Shown: positions 6,025 through 64,000 of the stretch, piece by piece | Layout of the letters: each line of letters begins with the position of its first letter | Position numbering within the stretch: position 1 is the stretch's first letter | Assembly (NCBI GenBank): GCA_020184695.1 | Contig: JAANOX010000156.1 | Span: forward strand, 1 to 64,000 | Reading direction: 5' to 3' | Length of the DNA stretch: 64,000 nucleotides | Source of the DNA: Histomonas meleagridis 2922-C6/04-290x | Lineage: Eukaryota > Protista > Parabasalia | The notes under the pieces: model-generated | What the model saw: only the letters and a program-made list of their open reading frames with translations | The model's database searches: none | What the model was told of the DNA's origin: nothing | Program-made: the position numbers and the translations under genes

Positions 6025-7289
6025 CAGAGGTATAAAAGAGGAAAATTAACGTCCACACTCACAACTTTTTGAATGAAATAAAAATTTTTCAAAATGAAAA
6101 TATCTTGGTTTTTACTTGAATAATTATAAGATAAGATATAAAATTTATAACAAATAAAGTTTTATACAATAAAATTTTAAAATATATTTCATCTAATTTT
6201 GATATTCATTTAGAATTATATTATATCGAATATAGCGTTTCACAAAACGATAGACCAGTAACTGATCGAAAATTGGTTAAAAAGTCAATTTAATAACCAA
6301 AAAGTGTCATTTAATAATTTGTTATTTTGTGAAACCGAATTTATTTCATAAATGTTTAGTAACCATTTGGAGCGCCATTTAGTGCAATAACACGAATTAA
6401 TCTATCTGGCATTGAGTCAATGAGATTTTTGATTGTTTTCTCTTCTATGGTTTCCCATACTTGAAAAACAATTTCGATCAGATTCTCAATTGTGTCAGGT
6501 TTTGCCGGCCAGTTTGGCAATACATTACACATTAGCTTCAAATAATCCATGGTTGAAGCACATGTGTGAATTGCTGCCCCGTCTTGCATTAATTTCCATT
6601 GACCCACGCCATATGCTTCATTCATGCCTCATCAATGTTAATGATTAGTTCTGTTGGTACATTTTCGATATACTTTTTTAAGTGAGATATATGTTTTTCG
6701 GCAATATCCTTCGAAACTGTCAATCGCACTTCTACCTGTGGATATGCCACCCCCAAAGCAATTTTGTCTTCATGTCTTTTGATAAAGTTCACATGCCACG
6801 AACTGGAAACCAAAACATCAAATTGATCAAAAATATAATTTTTAATTTCTCTTGGTGTCATGGCATCATTATCACACGCGCGTACCAAAATTACATTTAA
6901 CACCTTGATTTCTTGTTCGTTTGTTAATGATGTTGGTCTTCCAGATGGTTTTTTATTCTATGATTCCTGAGATTTTTTGACAAATTTGAAGAATCGACTT
7001 CATTATATCGTGCAACACGTCTTATTGAAACATTTATCTCAAGGTCATTGCGCAAAACATATAATAATGTCATTGCTTGTTCGATTCTATATAAATAATA
7101 ATTTTTTTCAAGTAGTCGAATTGCAAATCTAACGTCAGTTTTGGATAGCTCCTTTGCCAGATTTTGGTACAGAATGCTAGAATCTAGTGGAGGATGGATG
7201 GTTCCTGGTTTCATCATTTTTTGCAAAATAACAAAAAAATAAACGTCTTTTAACGTGCAAAAAGTGCGGAACCCTTTTTTAAACCTCTG
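6025..7289 (-). mobile_element. pogo/Tigger-like DNA transposon, internally deleted
   Basis: TA on both sides (6023-6024, 7290-7291). Termini CAGAGGTATAAAAGAGG and CAGAGGTTTAAAAAAGG (14/17 identical, inverted). ORF pieces 6924-7295 and 6622-6903 give HTH, CENP-B-like HTH and the first catalytic motif (NIDEA); homologous to 18296-18964. Confidence 0.8.
6233..6625 (-). mobile_element. Tc1-type transposase 3' remnant nested in the pogo element
   Basis: LMQDGAAIHT...NWPA...LIDSMPDRLIRVIALNG, a Tc1 C-terminus with the SPDLNPIE segment deleted. TA-TAGCGTTTCACAAAA candidate terminus at 6231-6247. Confidence 0.7.
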
Positions 7290-8700: not shown

Positions 8701-9058
8701 CAATTAACGTTCTCCTTGGACTATTTGACATTTTCAACAATTTCGTTTTGTATGGTTTACTGGGGTGCCCCTTCCAAACCATCAAGAAACTTCCCTGTTT
8801 TAAGTCTGAGATATTTTTCTATTCAACATTACTTTACGCAAGCAAAATATTTAAAGTTTTTAAATCCATAGCAAGCTTTCTTTACAATTACATTTGCAAA
8901 TTATCTTGCATGGCCCACAAGCAGTGCACGCTGGAATTATTTGACGCCATTTTAAAATAAAGATACTAAACAAATCTAGTCAAAATTGTATTATCGTCTT
9001 ATGACACTTTTCAAATGAATTGTTTTTGAATATTTTACACATTACAATCTACAAAATT

Positions 9059-10963
9059 ATGGAATTTCTTCATCAACTTCAAGCTCAACAAGCAAATTTT
9101 CTTACCCAAATTTCGCAAAAAAAAGAAGAAATTCAATACTTACTAAATTTTCAATTAGGAAATTCATCTGTTATGAATCAAATGATCAAATCTATCAAGT
9201 ATAAAATTAATCCAATTATTGAAACCATTCTGAATGAGTTAGCGAATTCAAATGAAGAAAATGTAAGATTGACATGTAAAGCAGAAAATGCCACAAATCA
9301 ATCCCTTCTTTATCTCAAAGCATTTTCCGAGATTTCTTCATACATATCAAAACTTCAATCAAACTACTCACAGTTGTGGTCAATTTCTGTGTCTCTTGCC
9401 AAACTCTTAATTTCGAGTGATAAAGATTATCAAATACTTAAATCCAAACTTAATGATTATTCTGGTCATATAAAATTATTAATCAACAGGATTCACAAAC
9501 TTGAATGCGAGTTATTAACTGCCAATAAACGTGAAGAATGGATCCTCCAAGAAATTCAAGAACTTTTTACGTCGCCCAATCTTCTTATTAATGCCCAAAA
9601 CTCGTTTAATTTACTTTGTGCTTCTATAAGCAAAGAGAACGAAGCCAAACTTTCTGAGTACGAATCACAAATTGCATCATTAAATCAGAAATATAAAGAC
9701 TCCACAGAAGCGTCAATCAAATTACAAGCAGAGTGTGATGAAAAGATACGAATTCTTGAAGAAGAAAACAGCGCTCTTAAAGAAAAGAATTTATTATCTG
9801 ATAAATCCAATGAAAAATTCAAAAATGAACTTCAAGAACTTCATACCTCATTAGAAATCTTACACGAGAAAGCCGATCGAGCTGAAATCTTAGACACTGC
9901 CATTGATAAGTTCTGTTCTAAATGTCCGTATATATATTTTGATGGTGTTAATCTTCAATATAAAGTTGGGACAACATTAACGCAAGAAAATGCACTTGAA
10001 TCGGCATTAGAATCCATACGGAAAGAGAACAAAGAACTTCAACAAGAGATTCAAAAACTTAAAACTAACACGCAAAAAATTTCGGCGCATTATCAATCTG
10101 ATATTGATGAACTTCGTAGTAATACATCCAAAGAAATACATTCGTTACGGAAAGCATTAGAAACATCACAAACTTCATGCGAAAATGCATTAGCTGAAAC
10201 GCAACAATTAAATTTCGAAATCAAACAATTAAATTATGAAAAACAACGAGTTGAAAAACAATTAAAAAGTTTTCAAGAACAAAATCAAGAACTTAAACTT
10301 AAAAGTCAAGAAATTAAACAAAACCAAAAGAAAATTATTTCGAATTATCAAAAGAATCTTCCAACTTTAACAAGTATTTCATCTGAATCTGTATTATTTC
10401 CACAGATTAATATCCCTTCATTAGATAATGCTGATATTATATATAAAGAAGCAAACGAAACACTTACAAAAGATAATGAACAACTTAAAAAAGAAATCAA
10501 AAAATTAAAAAAGGAAATAATTGAATTAAAATCAAATAAAGAAGAAAAAACTGAAAAGATCGGAAATGTTATAAATGAGAATAAAATAGAAGAACTTGAA
10601 AATGAATTAAAAGTTTCTCAAGATAAAATAAATGAACTTCAACAAAAGATTGTCGGAATAGAAACAGATAAAGAGAAGTCACAAACAGAAATTAATGATT
10701 TAAATGAAAAAAATAATAAGTTGAAAAAAGCTTATCAAAGATATAAAAAAGATGTTAACTTACAAATAGATAGTTATAAAAATGAAATTCTTCAATTAAA
10801 ATTACAAATTGAGGATTTGGCTTACAGAAATGATCAAACAAGTGACGATGAAATGCCGCATAGAGAACCGCCAGAATTGTCTGATCCTGACTTAGATGAG
10901 ACACGTGAAATTGTGGAAGAAGAAAATGAAAATAAAAATGAAAATGAAACAGAGAATAAATAA
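9059..10963 (+). CDS. Long coiled-coil protein, function unknown (634 aa from ATG 9059)
   Basis: Uninterrupted ORF, heptad-like E/K/Q/L-rich sequence, acidic tail; divergent from the PCI gene. Confidence 0.85.
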   Translation: MEFLHQLQAQQANFLTQISQKKEEIQYLLNFQLGNSSVMNQMIKSIKYKINPIIETILNELANSNEENVRLTCKAENATNQSLLYLKAFSEISSYISKLQSNYSQLWSISVSLAKLLISSDKDYQILKSKLNDYSGHIKLLINRIHKLECELLTANKREEWILQEIQELFTSPNLLINAQNSFNLLCASISKENEAKLSEYESQIASLNQKYKDSTEASIKLQAECDEKIRILEEENSALKEKNLLSDKSNEKFKNELQELHTSLEILHEKADRAEILDTAIDKFCSKCPYIYFDGVNLQYKVGTTLTQENALESALESIRKENKELQQEIQKLKTNTQKISAHYQSDIDELRSNTSKEIHSLRKALETSQTSCENALAETQQLNFEIKQLNYEKQRVEKQLKSFQEQNQELKLKSQEIKQNQKKIISNYQKNLPTLTSISSESVLFPQINIPSLDNADIIYKEANETLTKDNEQLKKEIKKLKKEIIELKSNKEEKTEKIGNVINENKIEELENELKVSQDKINELQQKIVGIETDKEKSQTEINDLNEKNNKLKKAYQRYKKDVNLQIDSYKNEILQLKLQIEDLAYRNDQTSDDEMPHREPPELSDPDLDETREIVEEENENKNENETENK

Positions 10964-11030
10964 ATTTTATATTAAATAAACATTAAAGATATTATTATGT
11001 ATGGAGTTTGTGTCTCAGTTTTCATTTTAA

Positions 11031-11949
<919 letters not shown>

Positions 11950-12399
11950 AGAAATTGTTAATCATTTATTATAAAAAAAATTGGTTAAGCTAAAATGAAT
12001 CATTTATCATGTGAGAATAAATTGTTTTATCGATTTTTATTGGTTTTCGCTTTCTTACGATAAAACAAGAATGCACTTCGAGTTGTTTGACTTTGCTCGG
12101 CAAACAAAAAGAATTAAAATATATTTATTGAGATATAAAATAATAAAAAAGTTATAAGATAAAAATATTGTGTAAATTAAAAATGAGTTTATTTTATACT
12201 TTCAAATGAAACATATGTTCCCCTAGAAGAAAAGATATATATTTATAAATATATATTAGAATCTAATAGTCATTACGAAAGTATAATAAATCCACATATC
12301 ATGATTATTACCGTTGTGTTATTGTACCATCAATACAACAAAAAAATTAAAATATCTTTTGATAGACTAAATATATGTAAAAAATCATGATAAATAAAA

Positions 12400-47525: not shown

Positions 47526-48887
47526 TTATTTTAATATATCCTGATTTTCTTTTGATAATTTTGACGTATCCAATTTATTTTTGAATCTTTTAATAATTTC
47601 TTTAATTCCCCAATCAACAGTTTCCTTTGTTTCTATGATAAGATCTATTGGGTTATTTGCTATCCAATTGCTCCCGAACGAAGGCAACAAGAATCCATAT
47701 TGCAATGATATTTCCAATTCTTTTGACACATTCATTAAACCCTCGAGAATATTTTCGATATATTTTTGCCCAATTCCAAATTTATCTTCTTTCGGAAACA
47801 CATACATTAATTTAACAATCGATTGAACACTTAACATTACAATTGTTGAAGATTCGATTGCAGCTGTTTCTCTTTTATATTGATTCATATCTTCTCTTGA
47901 AACAATGAAAAACATTTGCTTAATCACTTGATTAACTCTGTTATTAATTGGGTTCTGAATAAGATTACGATTTGGCGTAGGACTTCGGTTGTTATGTCGA
48001 AGATTGGAACGATCGATTTGACTTCTTCGCCAATTTGAATCATGGAATAAATGCATTGGCACTCTTGTGCTTCCTGACTGATGCAGAAGCTGATGTTTTC
48101 GTCTATAACTTTCAAATAATGGTAAAATGCATTCTTTAATGACAATGTCAAAAATATGACCTGTCGGATACTTAAATAAGAAATTACGGCTGATCTCATT
48201 ACCACCAGAGATATGATATAAGTCGTTGTACGCTAAAAATTGGATGTAACCTGTGGACTTTAAGCCTTGGATGAGACGTTTATTATTTGATGAGGCAAAA
48301 CTAATGTTTTCACCACTAATAACAGATGTGGTTGCTAAGAAAAATTCTGAAACAATAAAAACTTTGATCGAGGATATTAAAAGTTGTGTTGAAAAGAACA
48401 TGAAAATAAGACCAATAATAATTGATATTAAAAAATGTGAATGGTAGGTTTCAAATACTTTCTGAAAACGAGATTTTTTTGTAAAATTAATATATGGAAC
48501 AAAATTTTGTTCAAATGTGAAAATAAGTGTTATAAAGAACGCCATAAAGGCTGCTATTTGTGGATTAGTTGAAGCAGAAAGAAGTTGTATGTCTGTAAAA
48601 AGGAAGAAACAAATAAACCATATTATTCTTATGAGTAATTTTTTTGCAGGAAGAACGCGCCAAGTTACTGGTACACTTGTAAGAGCTTTAATATGGATAT
48701 ATGCTAAAGCAATTAGAACCATGAATGAAAGGATCTCGAATTCCCATGAAAATTGAATGCCAAATATAATTAAAACATATTGATAAATAAAATCGATTAT
48801 AACATTAAATAGAACTGCCCAAACAACAATTCCTATGATTTTGTATAAAATTAATTTGGACTGAAATCCCAAAAAATCAGGTTCCAT
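47526..48887 (-). CDS. NDC1: Ndc1-like transmembrane nucleoporin
   Basis: About six N-terminal hydrophobic helices, then FLAYNDL...SRNFLF...IKEC and C-terminal KLMYVFPKEDKFGIGQKYIENILEGL, similar to Ndc1 EDRFGVVQ. Confidence 0.7.
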   Translation of the reverse strand: MEPDFLGFQSKLILYKIIGIVVWAVLFNVIIDFIYQYVLIIFGIQFSWEFEILSFMVLIALAYIHIKALTSVPVTWRVLPAKKLLIRIIWFICFFLFTDIQLLSASTNPQIAAFMAFFITLIFTFEQNFVPYINFTKKSRFQKVFETYHSHFLISIIIGLIFMFFSTQLLISSIKVFIVSEFFLATTSVISGENISFASSNNKRLIQGLKSTGYIQFLAYNDLYHISGGNEISRNFLFKYPTGHIFDIVIKECILPLFESYRRKHQLLHQSGSTRVPMHLFHDSNWRRSQIDRSNLRHNNRSPTPNRNLIQNPINNRVNQVIKQMFFIVSREDMNQYKRETAAIESSTIVMLSVQSIVKLMYVFPKEDKFGIGQKYIENILEGLMNVSKELEISLQYGFLLPSFGSNWIANNPIDLIIETKETVDWGIKEIIKRFKNKLDTSKLSKENQDILK

Positions 48888-48910
48888 ATGTTGCCTTTGG
48901 GCGCTGAATT

Positions 48911-48918
48911 GTCACTTT
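48911..48918 (-). promoter_or_regulatory. AAAGTGAC upstream motif (Trichomonas M2-like)
   Basis: 23 nt upstream of the Ndc1-like ATG. Confidence 0.45.
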
Positions 48919-50000
48919 TTTGAAATAAAGAATATTGTAGAACGGTTGACACGGAATACTTTTCGACAGATTTTTTTTATTTAAATATCCTATAAAACAC
49001 ATAAGACAATCTTTTTTGACTCAGTTATTTTTTTTAGCAAAAGATATTATTGAATGAAAATTGATCGATCATCAGATGTGTGAGTGTTACTTGTGTGACA
49101 CACTGATCAGTGTATTGGGACATCGAAAATGTCTCTCCTTATAGTTCTAAATTGGTTAAAAAGCAACAACCAGTAAACAGACGCAGAGATATACTCAAGG
49201 AAGTAAAATCATTGAAACTTACAATTAATAAATTAAATCATCAAATTGAAAAACTGAAAACAGAACCCTATTGCTCAAAAACAAATTAAACACGTCAAAA
49301 ACTGATCAGGAAAATGATTTCATTAGAAAATTTCAAGATCCCCATGCTATTTCATCTTATTTTTGAAAGTGTTTCCCAATTTTATTAAGAAAAATGGTTT
49401 TGCAGATTCCAAAATAACAAATATATTTAAAAATTTAGCTAAAAATATTAATGAATTGCCACCAATCAATATCATTGGATGCGTTTGACGCTGGATGGCT
49501 TAAATTAGTTAATGATCTAATCGAACGCACACCTTCATTCGATAGTATTGAAGAAAAATATAGGGATTCATTAAGAATACCATGCAGGAGAGTTAAGCTG
49601 CTTTCGGAATTGGATATATATTTACATGGATTAGTCACTTACGATGATATTCTTTTGAAAATTTACTTAATATGAAGTTCATATACTAAAATGTATACGC
49701 TATAGAATAACTTCAAAAAAGTCACATTTATCTTGTTATCTTATTATGTTTAATAGAAACATTATCAAGAATATGATGAGTGCTTAATGAAACTTTTCCC
49801 TCATTTTTTCCAATTAACATTATCAGAAGCAATTTTTACCGATAATATAGATAGAACTTCAATATTAAATTAAATTACTATTTCGTTTGCAATTATTTGA
49901 ATATATAAACAAGAATTCTAAGAAAAATTTTTGATAATTTTGTGTCACAACTTTTTCAATCTCATATAAAAAATTATATGCACAACTTTAAATTGAGTTT

Positions 50001-50233
50001 TTATTGGGTCTTTACTGTAATTGTATCTCCAGCCTCAATCATTTGGATAGAAGTATAACGTTGATAGCATGAAGAAATCCATCTTCCTTGGGCTTTAATT
50101 TTGCAATCAGCAATTCCAGCCAATGATGCTTCATGAGCGGCCCCTTTACGAAAAGAATATGTTGAATAACATTCTGGATTCACTCCAATTTTTTTTTATG
50201 CAATTTAAACTTTCTCCTAACTGTTCTATCACA
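50001..50233 (-). pseudogene. Tyrosine recombinase C-terminal remnant (YR3)
   Basis: IGVNPECYSTYSFRKGAAHEASLAGIADCKIKAQGRWISSCYQRY; cut off at TA 50234-50235. Confidence 0.85.
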
Positions 50234-50235
50234 TA

Positions 50236-51780
50236 CAGTTAGGGATTTGAACGTGTCCCAGGAATCATAGTGGTCCCATACGTTAAAATACGTTAATAAA
50301 TAATATTTAATAAAACCTCATTTTTCTCAATGTCAACATTAACACTAGCAATGCCACTAGATGAAATTAAACAAAAATTAGATACTATTTATATTTCTCA
50401 AATATTTACTCTATCATTATTAATAAATCCTGACTTTATGAACTTAGAATATAAAAATCATCAGCTTTATTTTCATCTACAAATTTGCATCTGAATTCGA
50501 TAATATTACTTCCACTTTTAATCAACTAGCATTCGACTTTAATATGTGTCGTAAAACGATATCTAGAAGTATCTCAAACTGCCCACAAGATCCAAAACCT
50601 TTAGGTCGACATAGAGCATTAGATGAAGATAAAGAATAAATAATTGTTCAAGCAATTATTGATTCATCTAATGGAGGTCATGCAATGACCCAAAGGCAGT
50701 TATTATATTTTATCAAAGAAAAATTTGATTTATCTATAACAAAGTAATGTATAAATCAATTTTATTATAGAAATAGAGATAAAATTAAAAAATGTAGATC
50801 ACTCTCTCAAGAAGACACAAGAATGACAGTTCCTAGAGAGCATTTATAATAACACTTACAAAACATGCATAAACATGTGGATGGAAGGTTAACAAAATAT
50901 ATTTTTAATTTAGATGGAGTAGGAACTTCATCTTGGGAAGATCGAAAACCGAAGAAAGTTTTTGTTGATGTCAAAATTAACTCAAACAATGTTCATCATT
51001 CTTCAACAAGAAAAGTAACGCATATGACACTCCTTACATGTGTTTCGACAGCAGGTGATGCTCTTACTCCCATGTTAATAACCAAACACTAATATAGTAA
51101 TGATTTATGATAAAACGGCTTACGACAAGATGAAGATGTAATGATTCGGATTCGAAATCCACCTTACGTTGATTCTGAGTTATTTAAAGAATATATTAAT
51201 GATGTATTGATATCATATATCAAATGTGTTATAGAAAAATATGAAGTTAAGAAGTATGTAGCAATTTTATTAATAAATTCTTATCGTGGGCATTGTAACG
51301 TTGATTATTTAAAAGTTTCAAAAGAAAATAAAGTAAGTGTTTAATGTTTTCCTCCCCGTACCACAAACATTTACCAAGCCCTTGATTTGTCATTATTTGG
51401 CGTTTTTAAAAAAATCAAAAATACTGTTAAGGATAAAGAATACCAAAAAATGGTTGAAAATGCAATTATAGTTATATAAAAAACATACAAGCAGACCACA
51501 ACATCATTTAACATTCGTGGGGTATTCAGGGCAGGAATAAGTACTAAAACTGTTGCTGGTAAGAGAGTTGTTGAATTTGTTGCCCATAAGCTGGTTTCGA
51601 ATCCGGGATTTCATGAACTTTTAAATTTTAATATAAAAATCGATGAAGTCAAAAAGAAAAGGCAACACAAATTCGGCATCGTGAATTCTGAATACCTTCC
51701 ACCTGGTCGTACTTTAATTAGCAACGAAACTCCAAAATATGAAGATGAAGATGAAATAAATCAACTCTTGCAATGAAGAT
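50236..51780 (+). mobile_element. pogo-like (DDE_1) transposon, degenerate
   Basis: TA-CAG left end; GRHRAL, HAMTQRQL, IFNLDGVG, HMTLLTCVSTAGDAL, FPPRTTNIYQALDLSLFGVFK across stops. Confidence 0.8.
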
Positions 51781-51898
51781 TAAATTGCAATTTTTTCCTT
51801 TCCTATATGAGATATCATAGTCTAAATAAATCTCTATACGCAAAAGAATAATTCAAATCATTTATATAAATATGAATAATTAAAACAAGACTATCCTA

Positions 51899-53154
51899 CA
51901 ACCGTGGGCAATTTGAATACTGCCTCTTCAAAAAGTGGAGGCCCCATTCAATCATAATGAAGAATTTGAACTAGGTGTAATTCGCATTCAAAAATTGGCT
52001 CTCAATTCGTTTTCTGGACAAATATTTTCATTCAATTTCATTTCGAATAATTTACAATTTCCGCTATGTTTTTTGGACAAGAATAAAATTTGGCAAATAT
52101 GGTGTGGAATGAATGTTGTAATATCTCATTTTCCGCTTTTCGATTCTTATTGTTTCATGTTAATTCTCATCTATAAGCGCTCATTGTTACTAACTGTATT
52201 TGTTTTCACTTGTATGTGTTTATTTCATTGTTTCATGTTAATTCTCACTTATATGTGCTAATTCTCATTTATTCTCATTTATTTTCACTTACTTATAATA
52301 TATTTTTATTCTCACTTATATGTGTTTCTTTTCATTATTTTATGTACCAACATCTGCTCAAATCATTCAAATATAATTTGGCAAATATATAATTTGAACG
52401 ACTTTCATTTGATATAGATAATACATAGTGAACATGGGGTTTAGTTAAAGATGAATTCAAACTTATTCTAATATCAGAAATAAAGCTCATATGATTAATT
52501 ATATTCAAAAAGTTTACAAATCAATGTTTACATTATTATTTCAATGAGCAATCGATTTAATTATTTCCATCCAACTTCCACATAACATTGTATATTTTTT
52601 CTTTTTATTTTAATTGCTCTGATCGTTGTATAGATTAAATTTTATAAAATTTTAAACTAATAAAACATAATTAATATGTAGAACATGACAATTCACAAAA
52701 ATTTATATACGAAGCAATTGATATTATTGCTCAATCTGTAAAATATTAATTAAGTCAAAAATGAATTTTAATGTAACATTGATATAAAATTTGTGTTGTA
52801 ATACAGAGACGATTAAATATTTTACAATATCCTTTTTCTTGATCGTAATTTATTTTGATAATAATAATTGTTTTTTTTGATTCATTTTAATTAATGCAAT
52901 GTATAATGTATGCAATGTCGATAACTTGCTATTTAATAATATTTGTTTCAGCATCTATGCCGAATTTTATTTTCGTTTAAAAAACATGGCGAAAATCGTA
53001 AATTATTCAAAATGATATTGAATGAAAATATTTCTTTAGAAAAAAAATTGAAAGTTAATTTTTGAATGCAAATTACACCTAGTTCAAATTCTTCATCACG
53101 ATTGAATTAAGTCTCCACTTTTTGAATACTACCTATTCAAATTTCCCACGGTTG
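51899..53154. mobile_element. Non-autonomous element with about 160-bp TIRs and TA duplication
   Basis: Termini CAACCGTGGG(C/A)AATTTGAATA; TA at 51897-51898 and 53155-53156; arms align over about 160 bp including an identical ATGAAGAATTTGAACTAGGTGTAATT. No coding content; internal degenerate repeat at 52150-52340. Confidence 0.85.
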
Positions 53155-54004
53155 TAGAACAGTACCATTAATTGTTAAAAACATTCAAAATTGGAAAAAA
53201 TTATACGAACTTTCCACGCACCCTATAATTAATAAGATAATTTTCTGCTATAATCAAAATTATTCAGAATGATAGCTCTGTGAATTGAGAATGATTCATC
53301 AAGACCCAAAAAATAAAAAATTAGAAATGAGTATTCAAGATTATTAACTTGAATAAATTAGTTCTAAATAATGGAGAATGAGACACGAACAACTTAATAA
53401 TATCTAAACAATAATCACAAGAGATACAAACAACTAAACGAGGCACCAATAGCAATTAATTGTAGCGCATTAACTTGGAGTCGGATAAATAGTATTAAAT
53501 GATTAATAGTCGTATTTAATGAGTGAATTAGTATCAGGTGACTTTACCTTTAATGCCTACAAAAATATACATTAGGGAAAAAAGCACAAAATCTTTCACT
53601 TTTTTGCGATTCATTTAATTTTACTGGAGTTGGTTGCCAATTAATCCTTTTTCTTTTTGACAACATTACTAAAAGTAAATATACTTATTGTTCTGTTCAA
53701 AAACAAATAATGAGACAAATGAGAGGGTTCGAACTACTAAATATTATCCGAGACCAGAGCATCCCAGTATTTCATTATATTGTCAAAAGATGTGAGCCGA
53801 AATTCTAGCAATGTCTTTCCATTACGGCTATGAATATGCAATGTTAACTCTCACTCTAAATAATAAGCGGGTAGATTTAGATCCAAAAAAGCGTACTGAC
53901 ATTTATCTTATCATTGTTGTAAAGTTAGTCAATTTTGCAAAAAATGCACTGATACAACTTCAGTACTATTGTAATTGATTATCATATCATTATTCATTTT
54001 TATG

Positions 54005-54220
54005 GAGAAAAAGTACGGAGTATATTTCATCCTTGATTATTATTTCAGGTATGAGAATAATCATGAAGTTCTATACTTTGTAGTGTTATGGGAGAACGGC
54101 TGAACCAGTTAACTATTTGACGAATTGTGATATATTTATGTCGGAAAATTGAGCGATTTAAACAAATATGAACAAGCTGAAGGTATAATCAACTACCTAA
54201 ATTCAGTCGTAAATAATGAG
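54005..54220 (+). pseudogene. Possible chromodomain-like remnant
   Basis: YGVYFILDYYFR...LYFVVLWENG*TS...LNKYE pattern; stops present. Confidence 0.25.
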
Positions 54221-54463
54221 TTTTGATATCGGATTTATATATTATTGATGTCGATTTTTGAATGTTTCTGTATGTATTAATGCTATCTAATACTAATATT
54301 TGTTATTGACTTTTATTCAATACATTGTTTTTTAAATAAAATTCTTTTCTATCATTATTTAATTCACGATTGATAAATTAATTTAATGGCAAATAATTTG
54401 TATCAATCCTTTTGAGTGAAGCAATAAATTCACTTCTGATATGTGGTTTTCTTTGAAATGTGT

Positions 54464-55170
54464 TGTATATCGGAACGTTGCTGAAATTAACGGCCGCTAA
54501 TTTTCAATGATTTACATTATTCGAAAAGTCAGTGATGTCAAAATATTTCGGAGTACCCGTAATTACTATAACGTTCTCTATCGTTGTTCACATGTGATAA
54601 AGTATTCATTTCTTATAGTATAATATTGTATAGTTTACATAAAAAGTAACATAAAATGCAGAGCGGAAGCTACAAGATCAGAAAATTCTTAAATGAACGA
54701 ATTTTGTATCTCGAAAACAAAATCATGAACGATGTTCCAGTGCGTTTAATTATAAGACGACAAAATATCTGCCTCAAAAGATCAAAAAAATAATTTACAA
54801 AAGCCAAAATCGAATACCCAATTGTCCCCAGAGGAAGAAAAGCTATAGAGCCATCTAAAAAGCAAATTGACAAAGTTACTGAATACCGTGAACAATTTCC
54901 TGTTGGTTATCAAAGATGTGCATTCGCTGTAGCAAGTAAAGAAAACATAACATTTACTGAAAGGCAATGTCACAAAATATATGAAGCAAAGGGCTTATAT
55001 ATTTATGAACATGAATACAAAGGAAAAGACGATGATCGAATTAGGTATGTTGTGAAAATTTGGAACATTGATCTTCATGAACTCGAAGACATGATTATGC
55101 GAAATATAAATGGTGAAGAAGAGCACAAGAAACAATATCTGCTCACATCAATGAATTCACTATATAATAA
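54464..55170 (+). mobile_element. Second, truncated IS481-like copy
   Basis: GRKAIEPSKKQIDKVTEY...VGYQR...GLYIYEHEYKGKDDDRIRYVVKIWNIDLHEL aligns with 36685-37092; TGTATATCGGAA candidate terminus at 54464. Confidence 0.7.
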
Positions 55171-56199
55171 CTAGGAGATCCATAGAAGGCCATATATCAA
55201 GGAGAATCAGGAACATAATCAGGTTGTAAATCAATCAATTGAATCATGAAGCTACTAGTGGGTTGCAACAGTTAATGATTATTCATAAGCAAATTACGAT
55301 AGTATTAGAATGGCAGCAAATAGGCGGTTGACTAGGTAAAAACCCGGTTGACACCTAATTTTATCCGATTAAAATCCAAAATTTTATATGACTAATAATA
55401 ACGGGAGCGTATTTTACATACGCACTTTTATACGCGCTTTTCGTAATAAACTATTCAAATACGCACTTTTTTGAATGCACGCCGATCTAACCGAAAAATA
55501 TTGCAATTTTATTCATTTTTTTCTAACTTCGAAAATCAAACTTAATAATTATTGATAAAATTAATATATAATATAGCTTATATAAAGTAATAAAATAATT
55601 TAATGTTAAATTTTCGAAAAATTAATTATATGATGAAATAAGATTAATTTGAAAAAATATTTTAATTTTAAAATTCCAATAGCATTAATCGAATCTACAC
55701 ATTCAAGAATATATATCTATAATGTTTTTTTGGATTAAAATATCTTGTATTCATGGGAAAAAATGATGATATTTACCAAAAAAATTGAGTTTAATTGAAT
55801 TATTGAATGAGTATTCAATTCTTACGTGGAAAAACCGTAAATAAAAACAACACATTCAAAAAAATTTGACGTACGATATTTAACTCAAAAGTGATTTTTT
55901 GTTTGAAATAAAAATATTTTAATTAAAAATGATAAACTGATAATTTTATTACTATTATATGAATAAATATCGATAATTATTGACTATATCAGAGTTTTAT
56001 AAATTTTATCAAATTAAATTTTTAAATCTCAATTAGATTGCATTCAAAATTTAGTTGATGATCATTAAAACATTATATGATAATTTATGCATTTACTCAT
56101 CATTAATTATTTTATTCATTCATTATTATTCATCATAATGTATCTTAAATATTTATCATTCATCATTATATATTATTAATCATTTATTGTTATATTTAT

Positions 56200-56430
56200 T
56201 TATGAATAACATTATGCATTACATTAATGAATAACATTATACATTATATTATACAATATATTATACATTACATTAATAATGAATAACAATATTCGTTACA
56301 CTAATGAATAACAGTATAAATAACATTATACAATACATCATGAATAACATTATACAATACATTAATGTATAACATTATACAATACATTATTAGTAACATT
56401 ACAATACATTATGAATAACATTATGAAATG
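56200..56430. repeat. Degenerate ATGAATAACATTATACAATACATT minisatellite
   Basis: Multiple imperfect copies of a roughly 24-27-nt unit. Confidence 0.75.
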
Positions 56431-56539
56431 TATGATATACAATAATTACAATTATATTTTATTTACAATTATAATCTCTTCCTGTTATTAAATGTCGATA
56501 AAAAATTCGGATCATTTTTAAAATGTCTAACTCTATTTG

Positions 56540-56760
56540 CATATATTTCATCAACTTTGATCAATTTTTATCCTCGATACAATGAACTAATTCAAAATAT
56601 ACTGTGAGTTACATATAGAATGACTTACATATTCTTGTGGAAGAACCATGATTTTGAAGCCGAAATAAACGCTATAAAAGAAGTTTTTATTATAGATTCA
56701 AATTCATTACGATTATGTTACTTTCATTATACTCAAGCTAGTAGTTGCAGTCGATGTTTA
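56540..56760 (+). mobile_element. MULE transposase core fragment
   Basis: DFEAEINAIKEVF...LRLCYFHYTQA (D...CxxH). Confidence 0.6.
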
Positions 56761-57329
56761 AATAGACTTCATCTCCCTATATTTCCTTTGAGGGTTTCCA
56801 TCGGCTAGGGAGTGTTATCTCCTCGAGTTTGTAAATCTTCTCTCGACCAACATGTTGGAAATACAAATGACAGCTATGCTGTTCGTAAGAAGGATGAACT
56901 CGAGCGCATTGCTAAGTCTAATCGTTAAAAGGTTTGCATTTTTTTAAGATTTTTTTTTTTGTGATCACCAAAATTGCAAAATTTTTTCCATTTTCTTTTA
57001 GGTTAGTAGTTAAGTAGGTAAATAAAAAAAATATTATTTTTAAAGTAATCATTTGATGATTAAAATAATTATATCCAAATGCTGATAATAATGATGTAAC
57101 ATAAACATATTAAATTTGATTTTTATGCAATGCTAAATTGTTAGTACATGTTACCAAAGATAAAAAAGCATTTTTTGAAGTTGAACCTGATGCATTTTCA
57201 CGTTGAATTGTGTATAGTTCAGGCTTTTAAATTTATTCATAATTACTCAAATGAATTCTTGTTATGTTCTTCTTGCTTGTTGTTAACGTTACTTGCATAC
57301 ACATTAAAAAAAAGGAATTGAGAATCATT

Positions 57330-60300
57330 TTATTTATTTGGCTCATATTTCAGTGTATTTGTTTCAAATTCACTGATTTCATCACTTTCCAAGACCAAGT
57401 TGGGATCCTTGAGTATATATCTGCACCCGTATTTAATTGATGTAACGCATCGAGGTCCATATTTATCAAATTGATAATCAGATGCATGAATTGGCAAAAA
57501 TTGAACAGATTTTCGATTGATTCCATTATAATAGTTATTTACGCGCCACATTTCCTTCTTATAAAATAATTTATTTACGCCCCAATGAAAATAATTCTCT
57601 GATAATATAAAAGCATTTAACATTTGTACATTTTTCGGTAAGACTGTTAAACGCTCACCTTCTTTAAAGGACGTAATAAAAATTGTGTTTACTCCTTGTG
57701 TAGATTCGATCTTGCGAAGTTCTTCTTCATTAATGCCTTTAGCATAGATGAAACTTATTTGTGAAGGAAGTGTAGTTGTTCGTTTTTTGGCATAGCGTTC
57801 AAATCTTGTTATCACTTTTGATGTAGTAACATTTTCATGAAGTATCATATACTTATCATCTTTTGCATCAAGTTTTATACCTGTTAAAGATTGAAAAAGA
57901 AGTGTTGAATCATGATTCGGTTGATCATAAAATACATATAATGGTTGATCACTTTTAACCAATCTTTTTGTAAATCTATTCATATCAATTACGCTAAATT
58001 TTCTTTCTCTTATGCTTCTTTCCCAAATATAAGGATAAAAGGTCGTTGTTAAATCATTTTCAAGTTTTCTATATACTGCCATAATATTATTGCTTTCTAA
58101 TTTCATTCCTAAAACATATGATCCAGCAAATGCAAAGAGTGCAATATCCCCGATAACTGGAATATATGCAATTGCCGTGGCTATTGCTACGTATGCACCT
58201 GTAATATGCCATTTTTTATTGGTTAAAAACTTTTGTTGTGACATTATACTTTGCCATTTTGCTTTATTTGCATTTACATATGAACACATATCACTTTTAA
58301 TTTCCCATACATATTGGTTAAAGTCAAAGAATGGTATTTCATCATTCCCTAAAATATATGGTAATATAATATTTACATAAAGACTAATTAATATTTCTAA
58401 TTTCTTTATGATATCTTCTGGATTTTCAGATTCAAAATTTGAATTCATTTCTATTATAATAACTGTATTAAGAAGCATACAACACGCACAACAATGCCTA
58501 AGCGATGATTCAAGTGTATTTGGTATTTTTTTGTTTTCAAATTTCAAAACAAGATTCATAAAGTTCATAAAGTATGGATCAAATAATGGATAAGAACTAT
58601 ATGTCAGTGCTTGTATGTATTGAGAGGGTTCAAATTTTACTTTAGGTATGGAACTCAAAATATAATATAAACTTTGATACACTGTATTAACATAACCAGG
58701 ATAATTATGTTCAACATCTCCGAGTGGCAATGGCATTAATGAATCTGGCCTATAAAGGTTTTTTGCAATATTATGCTCATTCCACCATAATTTTGTAAAA
58801 ACTGAAATATTTTCTTTATATTTTTCAGGATCCATATAATCCAAAACATTATCTAGGTCTCTATATTTTTTCACAAGAAAATAAACTTTTGATAATGGAA
58901 AAGATGAAGAAAGTTGTGCACGACGAATTGTTGTTAATATTGTTTTCATATCATCAACTTTATCATTGAAATTAGATACAGTAAGACATATTGTTGTTAT
59001 TGATGTAAATACTGCATTAACTTTATCCAATACTGGTTTAAGATTTAATTCATAATCTTCATCGCCAATACCTTGTGAATCAATGAAAAAAATTGCTGTA
59101 TCCTTATCAATATCAAGTGAATTACATTTTTCTTTAAGTTGACAATAGTCATCATCAAGCCTATTAATTAAATCAGAAACAATATATGGACCATCAATTA
59201 AAATTCCTTGTGTTTGACTTTTTATACCCTTACCTGCATAAAATGCCGCGTTTCCAGTAAGTGTCCGAAGAAATGTAGATTTTCCTGATTGATATGGACC
59301 AAATAGCATCACTAAAACAATTGATCTATCTCCTGCTTTTTTCAAAACAGACTCAAATACATCTAATAATATTGGATAAGATCCTTTTTCATTCCATGGG
59401 TGTTGTTTTCCAGGAAGTTCAATTAAAGGTGTTGGAATAATAAAATTATTTAATGGACATAATGCTGAATCCAATAATTGATTTTTATATGTGTCAAGAA
59501 CTGATCTATTAACTTTTAAATCATCAAGGCCATTTTTTATCTTCTTAAATATATCCTTTGATTTTGGCCTTTCACTTGGATCCTTTTTAATGCATTTCAT
59601 AAATATTTTTTTAAATAAATTCGGTATTCCAGAAGCAATTTGAGGGGGATTACCATCCGCGATGTTCTCATTAATTTGTTGAATACTCAAACCTTTATAA
59701 GGAGGAGATCCAGAAAAAATTTCATTTACAAGAAGCCCAAATGAATATACATCAGTTTTTGGTGTATATTGTCCTCCTGATAAAACTTCAGGTGCAATAT
59801 ATGGAAGGGTAGACATTAGTTCTCCTTGAGGATTTTTATGTGAATCACCAAAACCTGCAATAATTGGATGAAAGTTATCATCAATGAGAATATTATCGAC
59901 TTTAAGATCATGATGTATTATTCCTTTTTCATGAAGATACTTTAAACCAGTAGCAATTCCGAAGATAATCATAGTTTTTGTGAGTAAATTCCATTCTGAA
60001 GGAGGTGAATTAATGATGTTACGTAAAGTACCATTAATATAAAACGGGGTAATAAGAACTGCCTTTTTGTAATCAGGATTGGGATAAAAACCAACCAATG
60101 ATTGGACTGCTGGATGTGATAATTTACATAACGTCTTGAATTCATTAACAAGTGATTTATATGAATCTTCTGTTAAGGCTCTTTTCATTGCAACGATTTG
60201 ACCTGTGTATTTGATGATTCCTTTATCAATACAGAATTCTCCTTTATGTATATTTTTTTCTGAAATTTCGAACAAGTCAAGAGAATCAATGAAACGACGC

Positions 60301-60347
60301 TGTTCTTCCTTAGTGAATTCGTGCTCATTTCTTTCTAAAACAAGCAT
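57330..60347 (-). CDS. TKL-like pseudokinase fused to a GBP/atlastin-like GTPase, hydrophobic hairpin and degenerate second P-loop domain
   Basis: Kinase fold with VAMK, HHDLKVDN, AGFG in place of DFG, APE and DVYSFG; G1 GPYQSGKS, G2 SQTQG, G3 DSQG; hydrophobic ITGAYVAIATAIAYIPVIGDIALFAFAGSYVLG; LYVFYDQPNHDSTLLFQSLTG. Confidence 0.88.
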   Translation of the reverse strand: MLVLERNEHEFTKEEQRRFIDSLDLFEISEKNIHKGEFCIDKGIIKYTGQIVAMKRALTEDSYKSLVNEFKTLCKLSHPAVQSLVGFYPNPDYKKAVLITPFYINGTLRNIINSPPSEWNLLTKTMIIFGIATGLKYLHEKGIIHHDLKVDNILIDDNFHPIIAGFGDSHKNPQGELMSTLPYIAPEVLSGGQYTPKTDVYSFGLLVNEIFSGSPPYKGLSIQQINENIADGNPPQIASGIPNLFKKIFMKCIKKDPSERPKSKDIFKKIKNGLDDLKVNRSVLDTYKNQLLDSALCPLNNFIIPTPLIELPGKQHPWNEKGSYPILLDVFESVLKKAGDRSIVLVMLFGPYQSGKSTFLRTLTGNAAFYAGKGIKSQTQGILIDGPYIVSDLINRLDDDYCQLKEKCNSLDIDKDTAIFFIDSQGIGDEDYELNLKPVLDKVNAVFTSITTICLTVSNFNDKVDDMKTILTTIRRAQLSSSFPLSKVYFLVKKYRDLDNVLDYMDPEKYKENISVFTKLWWNEHNIAKNLYRPDSLMPLPLGDVEHNYPGYVNTVYQSLYYILSSIPKVKFEPSQYIQALTYSSYPLFDPYFMNFMNLVLKFENKKIPNTLESSLRHCCACCMLLNTVIIIEMNSNFESENPEDIIKKLEILISLYVNIILPYILGNDEIPFFDFNQYVWEIKSDMCSYVNANKAKWQSIMSQQKFLTNKKWHITGAYVAIATAIAYIPVIGDIALFAFAGSYVLGMKLESNNIMAVYRKLENDLTTTFYPYIWERSIRERKFSVIDMNRFTKRLVKSDQPLYVFYDQPNHDSTLLFQSLTGIKLDAKDDKYMILHENVTTSKVITRFERYAKKRTTTLPSQISFIYAKGINEEELRKIESTQGVNTIFITSFKEGERLTVLPKNVQMLNAFILSENYFHWGVNKLFYKKEMWRVNNYYNGINRKSVQFLPIHASDYQFDKYGPRCVTSIKYGCRYILKDPNLVLESDEISEFETNTLKYEPNK

Positions 60348-62299
60348 TCGTTGTTAATTTGAAGTGAGATCCAAATCCCCAAAAATTCTATCAAAATGTT
60401 CTGAAAAAATGCCAGTTTACATTGCTGTATCGTGTTAATCAAATTGTATACTTTATCAAAGTTTGATGAAAAAGTTCCTTTAAAACTCCGCACTCTCAAA
60501 TTTATTTGTTGTGAATTATCGGCAGCATAATTCAAAAAAAATGAAAAATGTCATTTTGTTATTGTACGATTATTTAAACACAATAATGCGAATGATAATG
60601 CTTTATTAATGGTTCGCTAGACATGTCTGTATTAATAATAATTCAATTTGATTTCGAAAATGTATTTGATTTAGAAAACTTATTCGATTTACTAAATAAA
60701 TATGTTTGTGTTAAAGTGTGTGTTGGGTAAATATATTGGGTACTTTTTTTATTTATAATCACCTGCCCTTTTCATTCATTCATCTCCGATATCATCTAAT
60801 AAATGAACATTTATAAGTTTTTTAAGTGTAAGATAAAATATTTGTACATTTTTACTTTGTAATAACCCACATGAAAGATTCTCGAAAAATCCTGAATTAT
60901 GATCATATGGGAAAACTTCATTTCGGATCAATTTATTATCAGATCCTATTAGTGAAACAATCGCAGATTGTAAAAATGAAAATTTGATATTTAAAGATAA
61001 TTCTTTATCATGTTGTGTTATTTGATTAACATTTAATTCTTGATTATTATCGAAACGAATGTTGTTATTATATGAATAAAATTAATCGTCCATAAACATT
61101 TGGAATACAATCACATTAGAAATCAGAAACAATAATGTTACTTTCATAATTAATAATGATTCCAATCACCTTGTCGAATTTTACTTAAAATTTCGTTCTC
61201 TGAAAGGAACCAGTTTGATTAAATAAATTATTTTTTGATTTATTATTATAACAATCTATATAATAATAATGAGTAAAAGGTCTTGCTGTTTTTACTGTTT
61301 CATCGATTGGAAAATCAATATTTTGTTCAGAAATATAACGAATTCAGGTTTGAATATATAACTTGATTAAATATATATTATTATATTCCATATAAACACT
61401 TTTTAATTTGATGACATCTCAGAATTTTGTCGATTCATCTGCAGCAATTATTGCAAAAATAAGGACAAGATAATACTAAAAAAAAATCATTAAAAATTGT
61501 TAATATAATTTCTTTAGTTAATTTTTTAATTATCAAATTAGAATTCTGATTTAATATGTTTCTAAATCCATAAATAATTTGTGGGAATGTTGGAATAATT
61601 GAATGCAATTGATACTGTGCAATTAACATAAAATACTTTATAATGAGCATGAAATACTTTGGAGATATTCATTCGTGATATATAAGCGTTTGTGGGGACC
61701 TGTTTACTTATTAATGCTACTAAATCTCAAAATTTAACAATAAGCAAATTTTTGCAAAATATAAATTTCTAGAAACACAATAAAATACGATAATTATACC
61801 CAAAATTTAAAGTTTAGGAAATTAATGATTACATAATTTTATTTATATCAATTAAAATATAAAAACCTAATTAAACTTCAAAGATCATCAAAATAATTAA
61901 TCAATTTTTTTCGAAAACACCACTCATGAATGTATAATTGATATGAATATTGAGTATAAATCGAACGTCTGAAAGCTATTGAATAGACTCTCAATTTGAT
62001 AGAGTAAATTTCAATAAATATCTTCCATAGTGTTGATTTTATCGAGAAAATTTCTCAAAGACAGGGTCAACCAACTTTCCCTCTTATAGATTTATTTTTA
62101 ATTTTAAAATTATTTGTAATATGCTTAGTACATTCTAATATATAACATATAATGACAGCAGACAAATTTTTATGAAGATAAAATAATTTATTAAAAATTT
62201 CATTTCCTTTGAATTTATTCACTTTCCATTTAAATTTGTATACAATACAATACAGTTTTTAAACCCAAAATGATCGTCTAGGTCAAAACAACACAATCA

Positions 62300-62560
62300 A
62301 TCAATCAGCCACAGCTAAGCCAGAGGCTGCTTTAATCAAATCTGATTAAAGAAATATTAAGAAGTAGTTTTACTTACTGTTTAATTTCGTATAATACCTG
62401 GAAGCAATGTTTCTTCCAACTTTATTAGTCGATCTGTGTTTTGAAGCAGTCAGAATCCAATTTTGATTCGAAATCCCATTAATAAATGTCCCTTCTTTGC
62501 TTTTAGATTGGCCTCAATTGAATTACAGACTGGTAAATTCCTGTTTTGGAATCCTCTTGT
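62300..62560 (-). pseudogene. Possible UBR4/BIG-like fragment
   Basis: KGHLLMGFRIKIG pattern recalls the UBR4 beta-domain; heavily degraded. Confidence 0.2.
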
Positions 62561-62999
62561 ACACGGATACGAAAAATTACTCATAAATGAAATAACTGGT
62601 TAAGATTTTGACGATGAAATTTACCTCAAAAGGCAACAAAGTAACGTGTTTTCAACAATTTTTCAAATATAAATACCTCAAAACGTTATGCGGAAAATCC
62701 TTAGATATGAATTTTTGATTGATAAATATCATATTATAAAGTATTATTTTAAATTTATAAATAGATTTTCAAGGCCATTTTTTTTGTCCCATGTTCTGAT
62801 GTTACAACCAACTGGCCATATATATAAATTTACAAACTCCGATTTATATAGTTAACTATAAATGAAATTTACAGGGCGCCCCTTATAACAATTTATGGCA
62901 AATTATTGTCAAAATAAGTCAAATCGTTTTGCAGCTTGATCGGTTTTGACTGAAAAAATAAATTTCACTTATGATTTCATAATTTTTGCTTGTTGGTAC

Positions 63000-63681
63000 T
63001 CACCATCTGATGCATGGTGAACGAATAAAATATGGTGATGAAAAGAGAAGTTCTCTGCTTTGATTAGGTTCTGTTAATTTCCAGATAGTGATCGATTGTT
63101 CAGAAGATGCAAGAAGATATCCTCTCTCATCAGAAACTTGCAGTGGAACAAAGCTAAAATCTGTGATGTATGATAAATTTTTTTCGTCGTCATCAAACAT
63201 ATCATTAAAAGAAGATTTTTTGCTAGGAGAAGTAATAGTTGTGTATTTGGGAACAGAAACCGATACGTCCGGAGGTTTAAAGGCAACAGGACGAATTTCT
63301 TCTAAAGGATGAAATAATGTAAATAAAATTGGAAAATCCAAATACTGTGACATAGATGATTCAGGTGACCTAAGTAATAGAAGTGATTTGTGGAGTGGAA
63401 ATATTTTTGCAATTTGAAATGGAAGAGGAATTAAAAATTAAGCCGCTCTTGTGAAGCACGGCCAAGAATTGGTCATTACCAATCACACATAAGGTTGCAT
63501 CGATTGCTTCGTTTGAAACTGTTAAATGATGAAGAAGACAGCGATGCTTTGACCATATCAATTGATTACTGAACCATAATAACTCAAAACCATCACTGTT
63601 AACTTTGTAATGATGTTTTTGTGTTGGATCTGGTAATTTATTGATTCCAAATGGGGAATAAACCCCAACATTTCGAATCAT
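63000..63681 (-). pseudogene. APC1 (anaphase-promoting complex subunit 1) 5' fragment, frameshifted and truncated
   Basis: ELLWFSNQLIWSK, then after a frameshift in a T run near 63435 IPLPFQIAKIFPL...PILFTLFHPLEEIRP, matching the ANAPC1 N-terminus. Stops at 63000. Confidence 0.75.
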
Positions 63682-64000
63682 TACCAGTTAAGGATCGAAT
63701 TTTTAAACGGTCGCTGGTTTCGAAACATTGTTTTTAATGAAATATTTTTAAATATGTCAAAAAAAATTGTGAATTTTAAATTATGCCATAATGACCAAAC
63801 TGAATAACGTAAATTAACGGTCATTCTATGAATAAAAGATTCACAACGCATTTTATTTGATGGGTTTCTTGATTTTTTATTTTTAGAACTCAATCATAGA
63901 GGCCTTCTATGGGAGGTTGACATTTTTTTCCCAATTTATTTCTCATGTTTCATCAAACATTGAAGTAAAACTTTTTGATTGGAGGTTTTCGGTGTATCTT

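Follow-up and report, generated by a model that had tools for sequence, protein, structure and literature searches.

A predicted pseudokinase joined to a GBP/atlastin/Sey1-class G domain and a predicted membrane hairpin in the parabasalid Histomonas meleagridis

The window analysed here is a stretch of 64,000 nucleotides (nt) from the parabasalid Histomonas meleagridis 2922-C6/04-290x (NCBI GenBank assembly GCA_020184695.1, contig JAANOX010000156.1, positions 1 to 64,000 of the forward strand). Towards its far end, on the reverse strand, lies a single-exon gene for a protein of 1005 amino acids (aa), in which a kinase domain, a large G domain, a helical stalk with a hydrophobic tip and a C-terminal alpha/beta domain follow one another. 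An earlier note, made from the letters alone, had read the gene as a fusion of a pseudokinase, a GTPase like GBP and atlastin, a membrane hairpin and a degenerate GTPase. Here, we establish the architecture of the protein, the class of its G-domain fold, the state of its motifs, its conservation in a family and signs of its expression and constraint. Our reading, held with somewhat more confidence than doubt, is that this is a functional gene with four modules in fixed order: a TKL-type (pseudo)kinase, a GBP-class G domain, a stalk with a hairpin and a probable dead G domain.

Results

The open reading frame (ORF) at 57330-60347 runs uninterrupted from ATG to TAA, as the earlier note had described it, and the positions given there for the GFG motif, for G1 and for the hydrophobic stretch were each correct on re-mapping. 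The ATG is the first in-frame start codon past the upstream stop (ATG, GTG and TTG considered), and the alignments of relatives begin at Met1. The window is AT-rich (G+C 23-36%), and for a 3-kb frame to stay open at about 28% G+C is far beyond chance. The features of the gene are as follows; pLDDT stands for the predicted local distance difference test.

57330..60347, reverse strand: complete single-exon ORF of 1005 aa, with ATG start and TAA stop; contigs from RNA libraries overlap it
59541..60245, reverse strand: protein kinase domain, TKL-like, predicted pseudokinase, residues 35-269 (Pfam 2.7e-39; pLDDT mostly 85-95)
60183..60185, reverse strand: Lys55 of VAMK, the VAIK lysine, kept
59907..59915, reverse strand: HHD for HRD, residues 145-147; the catalytic Asp147 is kept, followed by Lys149 and Asn152
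59847..59855, reverse strand: GFG for DFG, residues 165-167; the Mg-binding Asp is Gly165, as in the Histomonas relative P0056
58566..59447, reverse strand: GBP/atlastin/Sey1-class large G domain, residues ~301-594
59277..59300, reverse strand: G1/P-loop GPYQSGKS, residues 350-357 (alignment to GBP5), with Gln353 at the GBP arginine-finger position
59211..59213, reverse strand: G2/switch I Thr379, within SQTQGILIDGPY; invariant in 13 sequences, nearly so in 36, and aligned with switch I of GBP5
59070..59081, reverse strand: G3/switch II D423-S-Q-G426, invariant or nearly invariant across the family
58857..58877, reverse strand: G4 position after strand 5, LVKK-Y-RD, residues 491-497; K493-K494 replaces RD, and an RD stands three residues downstream
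58209..58565, reverse strand: helical stalk, residues ~595-713, with the conserved motif LPYxLGxDxIxxxDFxQY (DSSP of the models; conservation)
58104..58208, reverse strand: hydrophobic tip of helix-turn-helix form, residues 714-748, the turn being Pro-x-x-Gly at 730-733; predicted to be a membrane hairpin (hydropathy and model)
58023..58103, reverse strand: return helix ending in the conserved YPxIW; Pro772 and Trp775 are present in >90% of the family
57333..58022, reverse strand: C-terminal alpha/beta domain, residues 776-1005, candidate degenerate G domain, with six strands alternating with helices (model)
57870..57941, reverse strand: P-loop-shaped strand-loop-helix without GK[ST], residues 803-826

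Residues 35-269 match two kinase profiles of Pfam, PK_Tyr_Ser-Thr (PF07714; E 2.7e-39, 135.5 bits at a cut-off of 23.1) and Pkinase (PF00069; E 4.9e-35, 121.6 bits at a cut-off of 31.7). By sequence they match 2519 kinases in the PDB, the closest being Pto, MST3/4, Eph receptors and IRAK4. Lys55, Glu69 of helix alphaC, Asp147, Lys149 and Asn152 are kept. The Arg of HRD has become His146, and the Gly-rich loop reads KGEF-CIDKG against a family consensus of xGGFGxIxKG, with one Gly left and a deletion of one residue. The motif alignment bears out the three changes that had been read from the letters: loss of the DFG Asp (GFG), HHD, and loss of the Gly-rich loop. A pseudokinase is commonly defined as missing at least one of the VAIK Lys, the HRD Asp and the DFG Asp, and the last of these is Gly165 here. 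By this standard the domain is probably a pseudokinase, predicted from its residues to be inactive.

The full-length protein was modelled with AlphaFold2 from 13 sequences (pLDDT 80.6; predicted template-modelling score, pTM, 0.76). Because the search with this model against the clusters of the AlphaFold Database (AFDB) was swamped by kinases, beyond which it gave a Tritrichomonas foetus member of the family and A2EFL8, a possible relative from Trichomonas vaginalis, the post-kinase part (residues 285-1005) was modelled alone from 36 sequences (pLDDT 86.8, pTM 0.86). The best 50 Foldseek matches in the PDB were solely GBP1/2/5, atlastin-1/3, RNF112 and Sey1p (E 4e-9 to 6e-6). Against the Swiss-Prot models in AFDB, GVIN1 came top, along with atlastins, SEY1 homologues and GBPs, and a shape search of the ESM Atlas was concordant (GBP, atlastin, RHD3, RNF112, ZFYVE1). 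A sequence profile aligns the P-loop and switch I with those of GBP5 (E 0.014). By Foldseek and the ESM Atlas, the middle domain has the fold of the GBP/atlastin/Sey1 class, and the earlier proposal, which hung on a fold within the GBP/dynamin superfamily, stands on this point.

The GxxxxGKS of G1, the Thr of G2 and the DxxG of G3 are all in place in this domain and invariant or nearly so in the family, as had been claimed for G1 (59277-59300), G2 and G3. The earlier label of 'GTPase' holds for these motifs and for the fold, but needs a caveat, because the RD of G4 is lost. In relatives the counterpart of the G4 site is LVRD; (V/I/A)RD is kept in 7 of 33, and the others have R or K followed by a different residue; among the paralogs with LVRD is the T. 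foetus protein TRFO_05780. RRxQ (residues 475-478, with an invariant Arg475) was considered as G4 and rejected, because it sits in a helix; the true G4 follows the strand at 487-493.

After the G domain, the models place helices at 549-666 and then two long helices, 673-726 and 733-769, around the Pro730-x-x-Gly733 turn. The maximum of hydropathy for the whole protein (2.05, Kyte-Doolittle, 19-residue window) falls on residues 714-748. These occupy 58104-58208, matching the two-segment hydrophobic hairpin that had been placed, after a helical region, at about 58105-58215. The outgoing helix is polar over its first 40 residues and the return helix over its last 20, and the hydrophobic arms are bordered by Lys-Lys-Trp and Met-Lys. 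The tip is hydrophobic in 26 of the 27 relatives that cover the region (19-residue Kyte-Doolittle mean 1.25-2.47), and its sequence is poorly conserved. The Foldseek alignment with atlastin-1 extends from the G domain on through atlastin residue 508, a range that we take to include both membrane segments of atlastin. From model and hydropathy, we infer that residues 714-748 may form a membrane hairpin with both flanks on one side. With arms of only 14-16 residues, the hairpin may equally well enter and leave the bilayer on the same side (re-entrant, monotopic) as cross it twice. Separately, a single RNA contig of low depth (4.4; X6), with 25 letters on its shorter side, joins 57865 to 58340 and skips 474 nt within the ORF (ends CA..TT). 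The skip would delete the hairpin region in frame (158 codons), and its support is too thin for an isoform to be called.

The C-terminal domain is modelled confidently (pLDDT mostly 85-96) and opens with a strand that leads through a loop of 8 residues into a helix. This is the P-loop-shaped segment lacking GKS that had been noticed earlier, and it is found at residues ~803-826. It carries a motif conserved in the family, FYEQxNxDSxLLFQSLTG, which is reminiscent of the protein's live P-loop region. Aligned with hhalign, the family's G domain and C-terminal domain are collinear over 175-188 columns, element by element (P 0.002-0.017). Language-model features of the C-terminal domain gave G-domain families at 0.85-0.88, a lead only. 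Its profile found only a chance match in the PDB (FANCD2, E 0.44) and nothing coherent in Pfam. The earlier idea of a degenerate GTPase module thus gains from the collinear alignment and from a fitting order of secondary structure, but finds no match in Pfam or the PDB, and the language-model leads contradict one another. We regard the domain as probably a second, degenerate copy of the G domain in this protein, now without a nucleotide site.

The family was collected with the non-kinase part of the protein. A word-indexed search gave 14 proteins; an exhaustive search with a profile gave 155 representatives at E <= 1e-3, 49 of them at E <= 1e-30. Named members come from Histomonas meleagridis, Tritrichomonas foetus and Tritrichomonas musculus only; the others are from assemblies of metagenomes or read sets (ENA, Logan). 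In public records they are called 'protein kinase domain-containing', 'TKL family kinase' or 'hypothetical'. Full-length members have 976-1068 aa and a fixed order of modules, and two from ENA/Logan (P0012 and P0013, 1575-1578 aa) have Sel1 repeats (PF08238) and about 550 extra N-terminal residues ahead of the core of kinase, G domain, hairpin and C-terminal domain. The same type of G domain also follows calponin-homology domains in proteins of 1010-1116 aa annotated as 'alpha-actinin' (P0070, T. musculus KAK8841391.1; P0086, Logan), and it occurs in stand-alone forms of 560-660 aa (P0073, P0076, P0079), one of which UniRef names 'GB1/RHD3-type G domain-containing protein'.

Among the 36 members with a kinase region, 16 look active (Lys, HxD and DFG present) and 20 do not, three of the latter being merely truncated at the N terminus. 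A survey of paralogs for active-kinase versions and domain shuffling, as suggested earlier, thus turns up both: 16 of 36 look active, and the G domain is shared with calponin-homology proteins. On a maximum-likelihood tree built from the non-kinase columns alone, the state of the DFG Asp changes nine times, and well-supported branches force at least six of these changes. Each species has many paralogs, which have diverged to 22-59% identity.

The window protein is 50-61% identical to Histomonas meleagridis proteins and forms a clade of 100% support with two of them, of which one is degenerate (P0001; HRH, GFA) and the other looks active (P0007; HRD, DFG). Closest overall (59% identity) is another Histomonas protein, P0056, which from its sequence is probably the ortholog. 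P0056 has both HHD and GFG, and the pseudokinase state is therefore inherited and not a set of private mutations, a possibility that the earlier note had allowed for. This relative is annotated as a 377-aa kinase (KAH0791694.1; GCA_020184695.1, JAANOX010000099.1). At its locus, a one-base frame change in an A7 run at ~7100-7115 interrupts a frame of ~1010 codons that is otherwise open. The other 620 residues run on in a different frame to locus position 9000, so that ~3 kb are open overall, and the two other forward frames have stops every few dozen bases. The frameshift is either an assembly error or a recent lesion.

Contigs from three RNA libraries, which carry the label of the same organism, cover the gene: X1 spans 57337-59904, and X6 and X7 reach 60320. 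RNA contigs are lacking over 57041-57334 and 60422-60568, stretches that are at full depth in the DNA run. The pattern fits a low-abundance transcript bounded by the ORF, and the concern that this might be an unexpressed copy largely recedes, as the contigs cover the gene and not its two flanks. Of 35 variants listed within the ORF, 17 are synonymous and 18 non-synonymous, which gives a crude ratio of non-synonymous to synonymous polymorphism (pN/pS) of 0.27 and indicates constraint on the ORF. Against the Histomonas relatives, at 48-59% protein identity, synonymous change has reached saturation.

Discussion

The predicted order of G domain, helical bundle and two closely spaced hydrophobic segments resembles that of atlastin and Sey1, whose two membrane segments are followed by a short cytosolic tail with an amphipathic helix (PMC9804665). 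Compared with atlastin, Sey1p and RHD3, the window protein adds an N-terminal kinase and has a globular domain of 230 aa instead of the amphipathic-helix tail; its G4 RD is lost and its hairpin arms are shorter. Because all sampled eukaryotes without atlastin are reported to have Sey1p (PMC9804665), the family is probably additional to the housekeeping fusogen, and a bona fide Sey1 is probably present in the group. With GBP1/2/5 and GVIN1 the protein shares the class of G domain (Foldseek E 4e-9 for GBP5; template-modelling score by target 0.63-0.65 for the GBP5 G domain). Unlike the GBPs, it has no GBP_C domain (no PF02841 match), no CaaX box (it ends ...YEPNK) and no arginine finger (Gln353), and it has a built-in predicted hairpin in place of a lipid anchor as well as the kinase fusion.

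DFCP1 (ZFYVE1), which the ESM Atlas search also gave as a structural neighbour, carries FYVE domains but lacks a kinase. It joins a nucleoside triphosphatase (NTPase) of GBP/atlastin fold to a membrane-binding region and is an ATPase (PMC10329651). It is thus a precedent that the fold need not use GTP, which matters here because the G4 Asp is missing. ROCO proteins (LRRK2 and the Dictyostelium Roco kinases) likewise unite a G domain with a TKL-type kinase on a single polypeptide, so that cross-talk of the two is conceivable here as well. The likeness is one of analogy, not membership: in ROCO proteins a Ras-like Roc and a COR domain precede a C-terminal kinase, whereas here the kinase is N-terminal and the G domain is of the GBP class, and Pfam gives no Roc or COR match. 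SMG9 and similar pseudo-GTPase partners are soluble subunits in their own right, alongside a PIKK kinase, in contrast to the window protein, where every module belongs to a single hairpin-bearing chain. The literature searched contained no account of a parabasalid fusion between a kinase and a GBP-like domain. The modules are known; on this evidence their combination is new, as are its occurrence so far in parabasalids only and the recurrent inactivation of the kinase, as predicted from residues.

How such a protein might work can be sketched from its structural relatives. The hydrophobic tip would lie in the membrane as a short double-pass or re-entrant hairpin, leaving kinase, G domain, stalk and C-terminal domain on one (cytosolic) side, as in atlastin, Sey1 and mitofusin. 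The G domain would bind a nucleoside triphosphate, which could be ATP instead of GTP because the G4 Asp is gone, and would dimerise via its nucleotide face as its relatives do. Dimerisation would tether or remodel the membrane in which the protein resides. The kinase head may be catalytic in about half of the paralogs and, in the window protein, would serve as a non-catalytic module for regulation or docking. The dead G-like domain might act as an in-cis partner or a brake for the live G domain. By analogy, then, the protein may be a hairpin-anchored tether or remodeller that dimerises through its nucleotide face, with a pseudokinase regulatory head and a dead G-like partner in cis, a proposal for which our belief and disbelief are close to balanced. 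We are distinctly more sceptical of its bolder extension, a new class of hairpin-anchored dynamin-superfamily mechanoenzymes that may run on ATP and in which the kinase head and a dead G domain mimicking a dimer partner exert control in cis.

Several results weigh against our reading of the protein as a whole. The Pfam profile GBP (PF02263) scores 16.7-17.4 bits, below its cut-off of 21.1, and covers residues 337-384 only (P-loop and switch I); it reaches E <= 0.01 in 8 of 36 relatives, and RHD3_GTPase (PF05879) gives no match at E <= 1 to the 1005-aa protein. Because the curated GBP profile stays under threshold, public annotation calls these proteins kinases only. An RD dipeptide right after strand 5 is peculiar to atlastin, Sey1p, RHD3 and GBP (Yan et al., PMC4576867), and in the window protein this class-defining G4 is not in register: K493-K494 stands in its place and the RD at 496-497 is out of register. 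To judge from the sequence, nucleotide specificity and even binding affinity could differ without it, and Gln353 replaces the arginine finger of GBP and atlastin. Given the altered G4 Asp and the ATPase activity of DFCP1, which has the same fold, we term the domain a GBP-class NTPase, for which GTP or ATP is possible.

The hairpin and the C-terminal domain have weak points of their own. The arms, at ~14-16 residues, are short for a full span of the bilayer. Of all post-kinase regions the hairpin is modelled with the lowest confidence (77-80 in the second model, partly <50 in the first), and one of the 27 relatives (P0002) has no hydrophobic stretch. The signal for a duplication of the G domain is weak: the HHalign probability is just 3-5%, and the hhalign score of 21.8 compares with 12.5 +/- 2.4 for 100 column shuffles, one of which equalled it. 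A language-model search with the C-terminal domain of a relative (P0043) led to ADP-ribosyltransferases, at low recognition. We consider that identity improbable, because 28 members have no such Pfam match and the alternating order of strands and helices suits it ill. The RNA evidence, finally, consists of low-depth assembled contigs with a gap at 59981-60127.

Some of these points have a place in other accounts of the protein. Kinase and G domain in one chain, with the kinase active-looking in about half of the paralogs, could make a membrane-resident signalling scaffold after the logic of ROCO/LRRK, in which the G-domain switch controls the kinase or pseudokinase, or the reverse, and no mechanical remodelling takes place. 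The fixed order and length of the modules, with pTM at 0.76-0.86, suggest communication between them, and a Gln for the arginine finger together with the loss of G4 suits a slow switch better than a motor. However, the G domain belongs to the GBP/atlastin/Sey1 class and not to the Ras-like Roc, no COR domain is present, kinase activity is dispensable in many lineages, and a long stalk with a hairpin anchor is the architecture of a membrane tether or fusogen (PMC9804665). We consider such a scaffold unlikely. Another account is a role in cell-autonomous defence. The protein would then assemble, like GBPs, IRGs and GVINs, on membranes of microbes that the cell has engulfed or harbours, and its (pseudo)kinase would be a sensor or a decoy. 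A built-in hairpin implies constitutive residence in a host membrane, not inducible targeting by a lipid anchor; there is neither a CaaX box nor a GBP_C helical domain, and the crude pN/pS of 0.27 points to constraint. Defence does have in its favour that GBP and GVIN1 are among the nearest folds, that each species holds numerous diverged paralogs (22-59% identity) with repeated loss of kinase catalytic residues, and that parabasalids are phagocytic. On balance we would give it little weight.

The remaining possibility, that the gene is a paralog in decay or without expression and that its changes in kinase and G4 are damage private to it, is largely refuted, and we think it very improbable. 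In its favour are the degeneration of two catalytic kinase motifs and of G4, the low RNA depth, and the lack of any other ORF of at least 150 aa in the stretch that holds the gene (48887-64000). All the same, the frame stays open for 1005 codons in AT-rich DNA, neither G1-G3 nor any family-specific motif is damaged, HHD and GFG are common to P0056, pN/pS is 0.27, and the RNA contigs lie over the ORF and not over the flanks.

With this architecture, the GBP/atlastin/Sey1 group gains a branch specific to one lineage. The series of paralogs, whose attached kinase looks live in some and dead in others, the state having changed at least six times, offers a natural comparison for the role of a pseudokinase on a nucleotide-driven membrane protein. 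In parabasalids, a group that counts parasites of the gut and the urogenital tract of animals and people among its members, the GBP-like G domain serves as a mobile module, joined to kinases and, in Tritrichomonas, to calponin-homology domains. If the pairing of a live with a dead G domain and the switch of nucleotide are true, the family would inform the regulation of the dynamin superfamily.

Other features of the window

One further feature lies just upstream of the gene:

60361..60367, reverse strand: initiator-like element TCACTTC, 14-20 nt 5' of the ATG, which would give a 5' untranslated region of ~17 nt

This element is a candidate for the parabasalid initiator, TCA+1Py(T/A). An antisense ORF at 58090-58380 is the complement of the codons for the hydrophobic hairpin and is without support. 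About 300 nt upstream of the gene, at 60646-60676, the contigs of both DNA and RNA are interrupted, with loose ends and an additional 26-38 letters separating the two sides, which suggests a variable short repeat or an indel polymorphism. On the other side of the gene, a highly abundant short RNA piece maps to 56856-56947 of the forward strand in all three RNA libraries, with a contig word depth of 473 (X1) and 558 (X7) and a binned depth of 122-462. It ends in poly(A) at 56947, and the 67-117 nt that precede it in the contigs are unmatched at the locus; the piece is thus spliced or joined to sequence from another place, or else it is a 3' end that another gene shares. Far from the gene, the 2-kb bin 10001-12000 has a GC skew of +0.495, all other bins of the window lying within +/-0.23.

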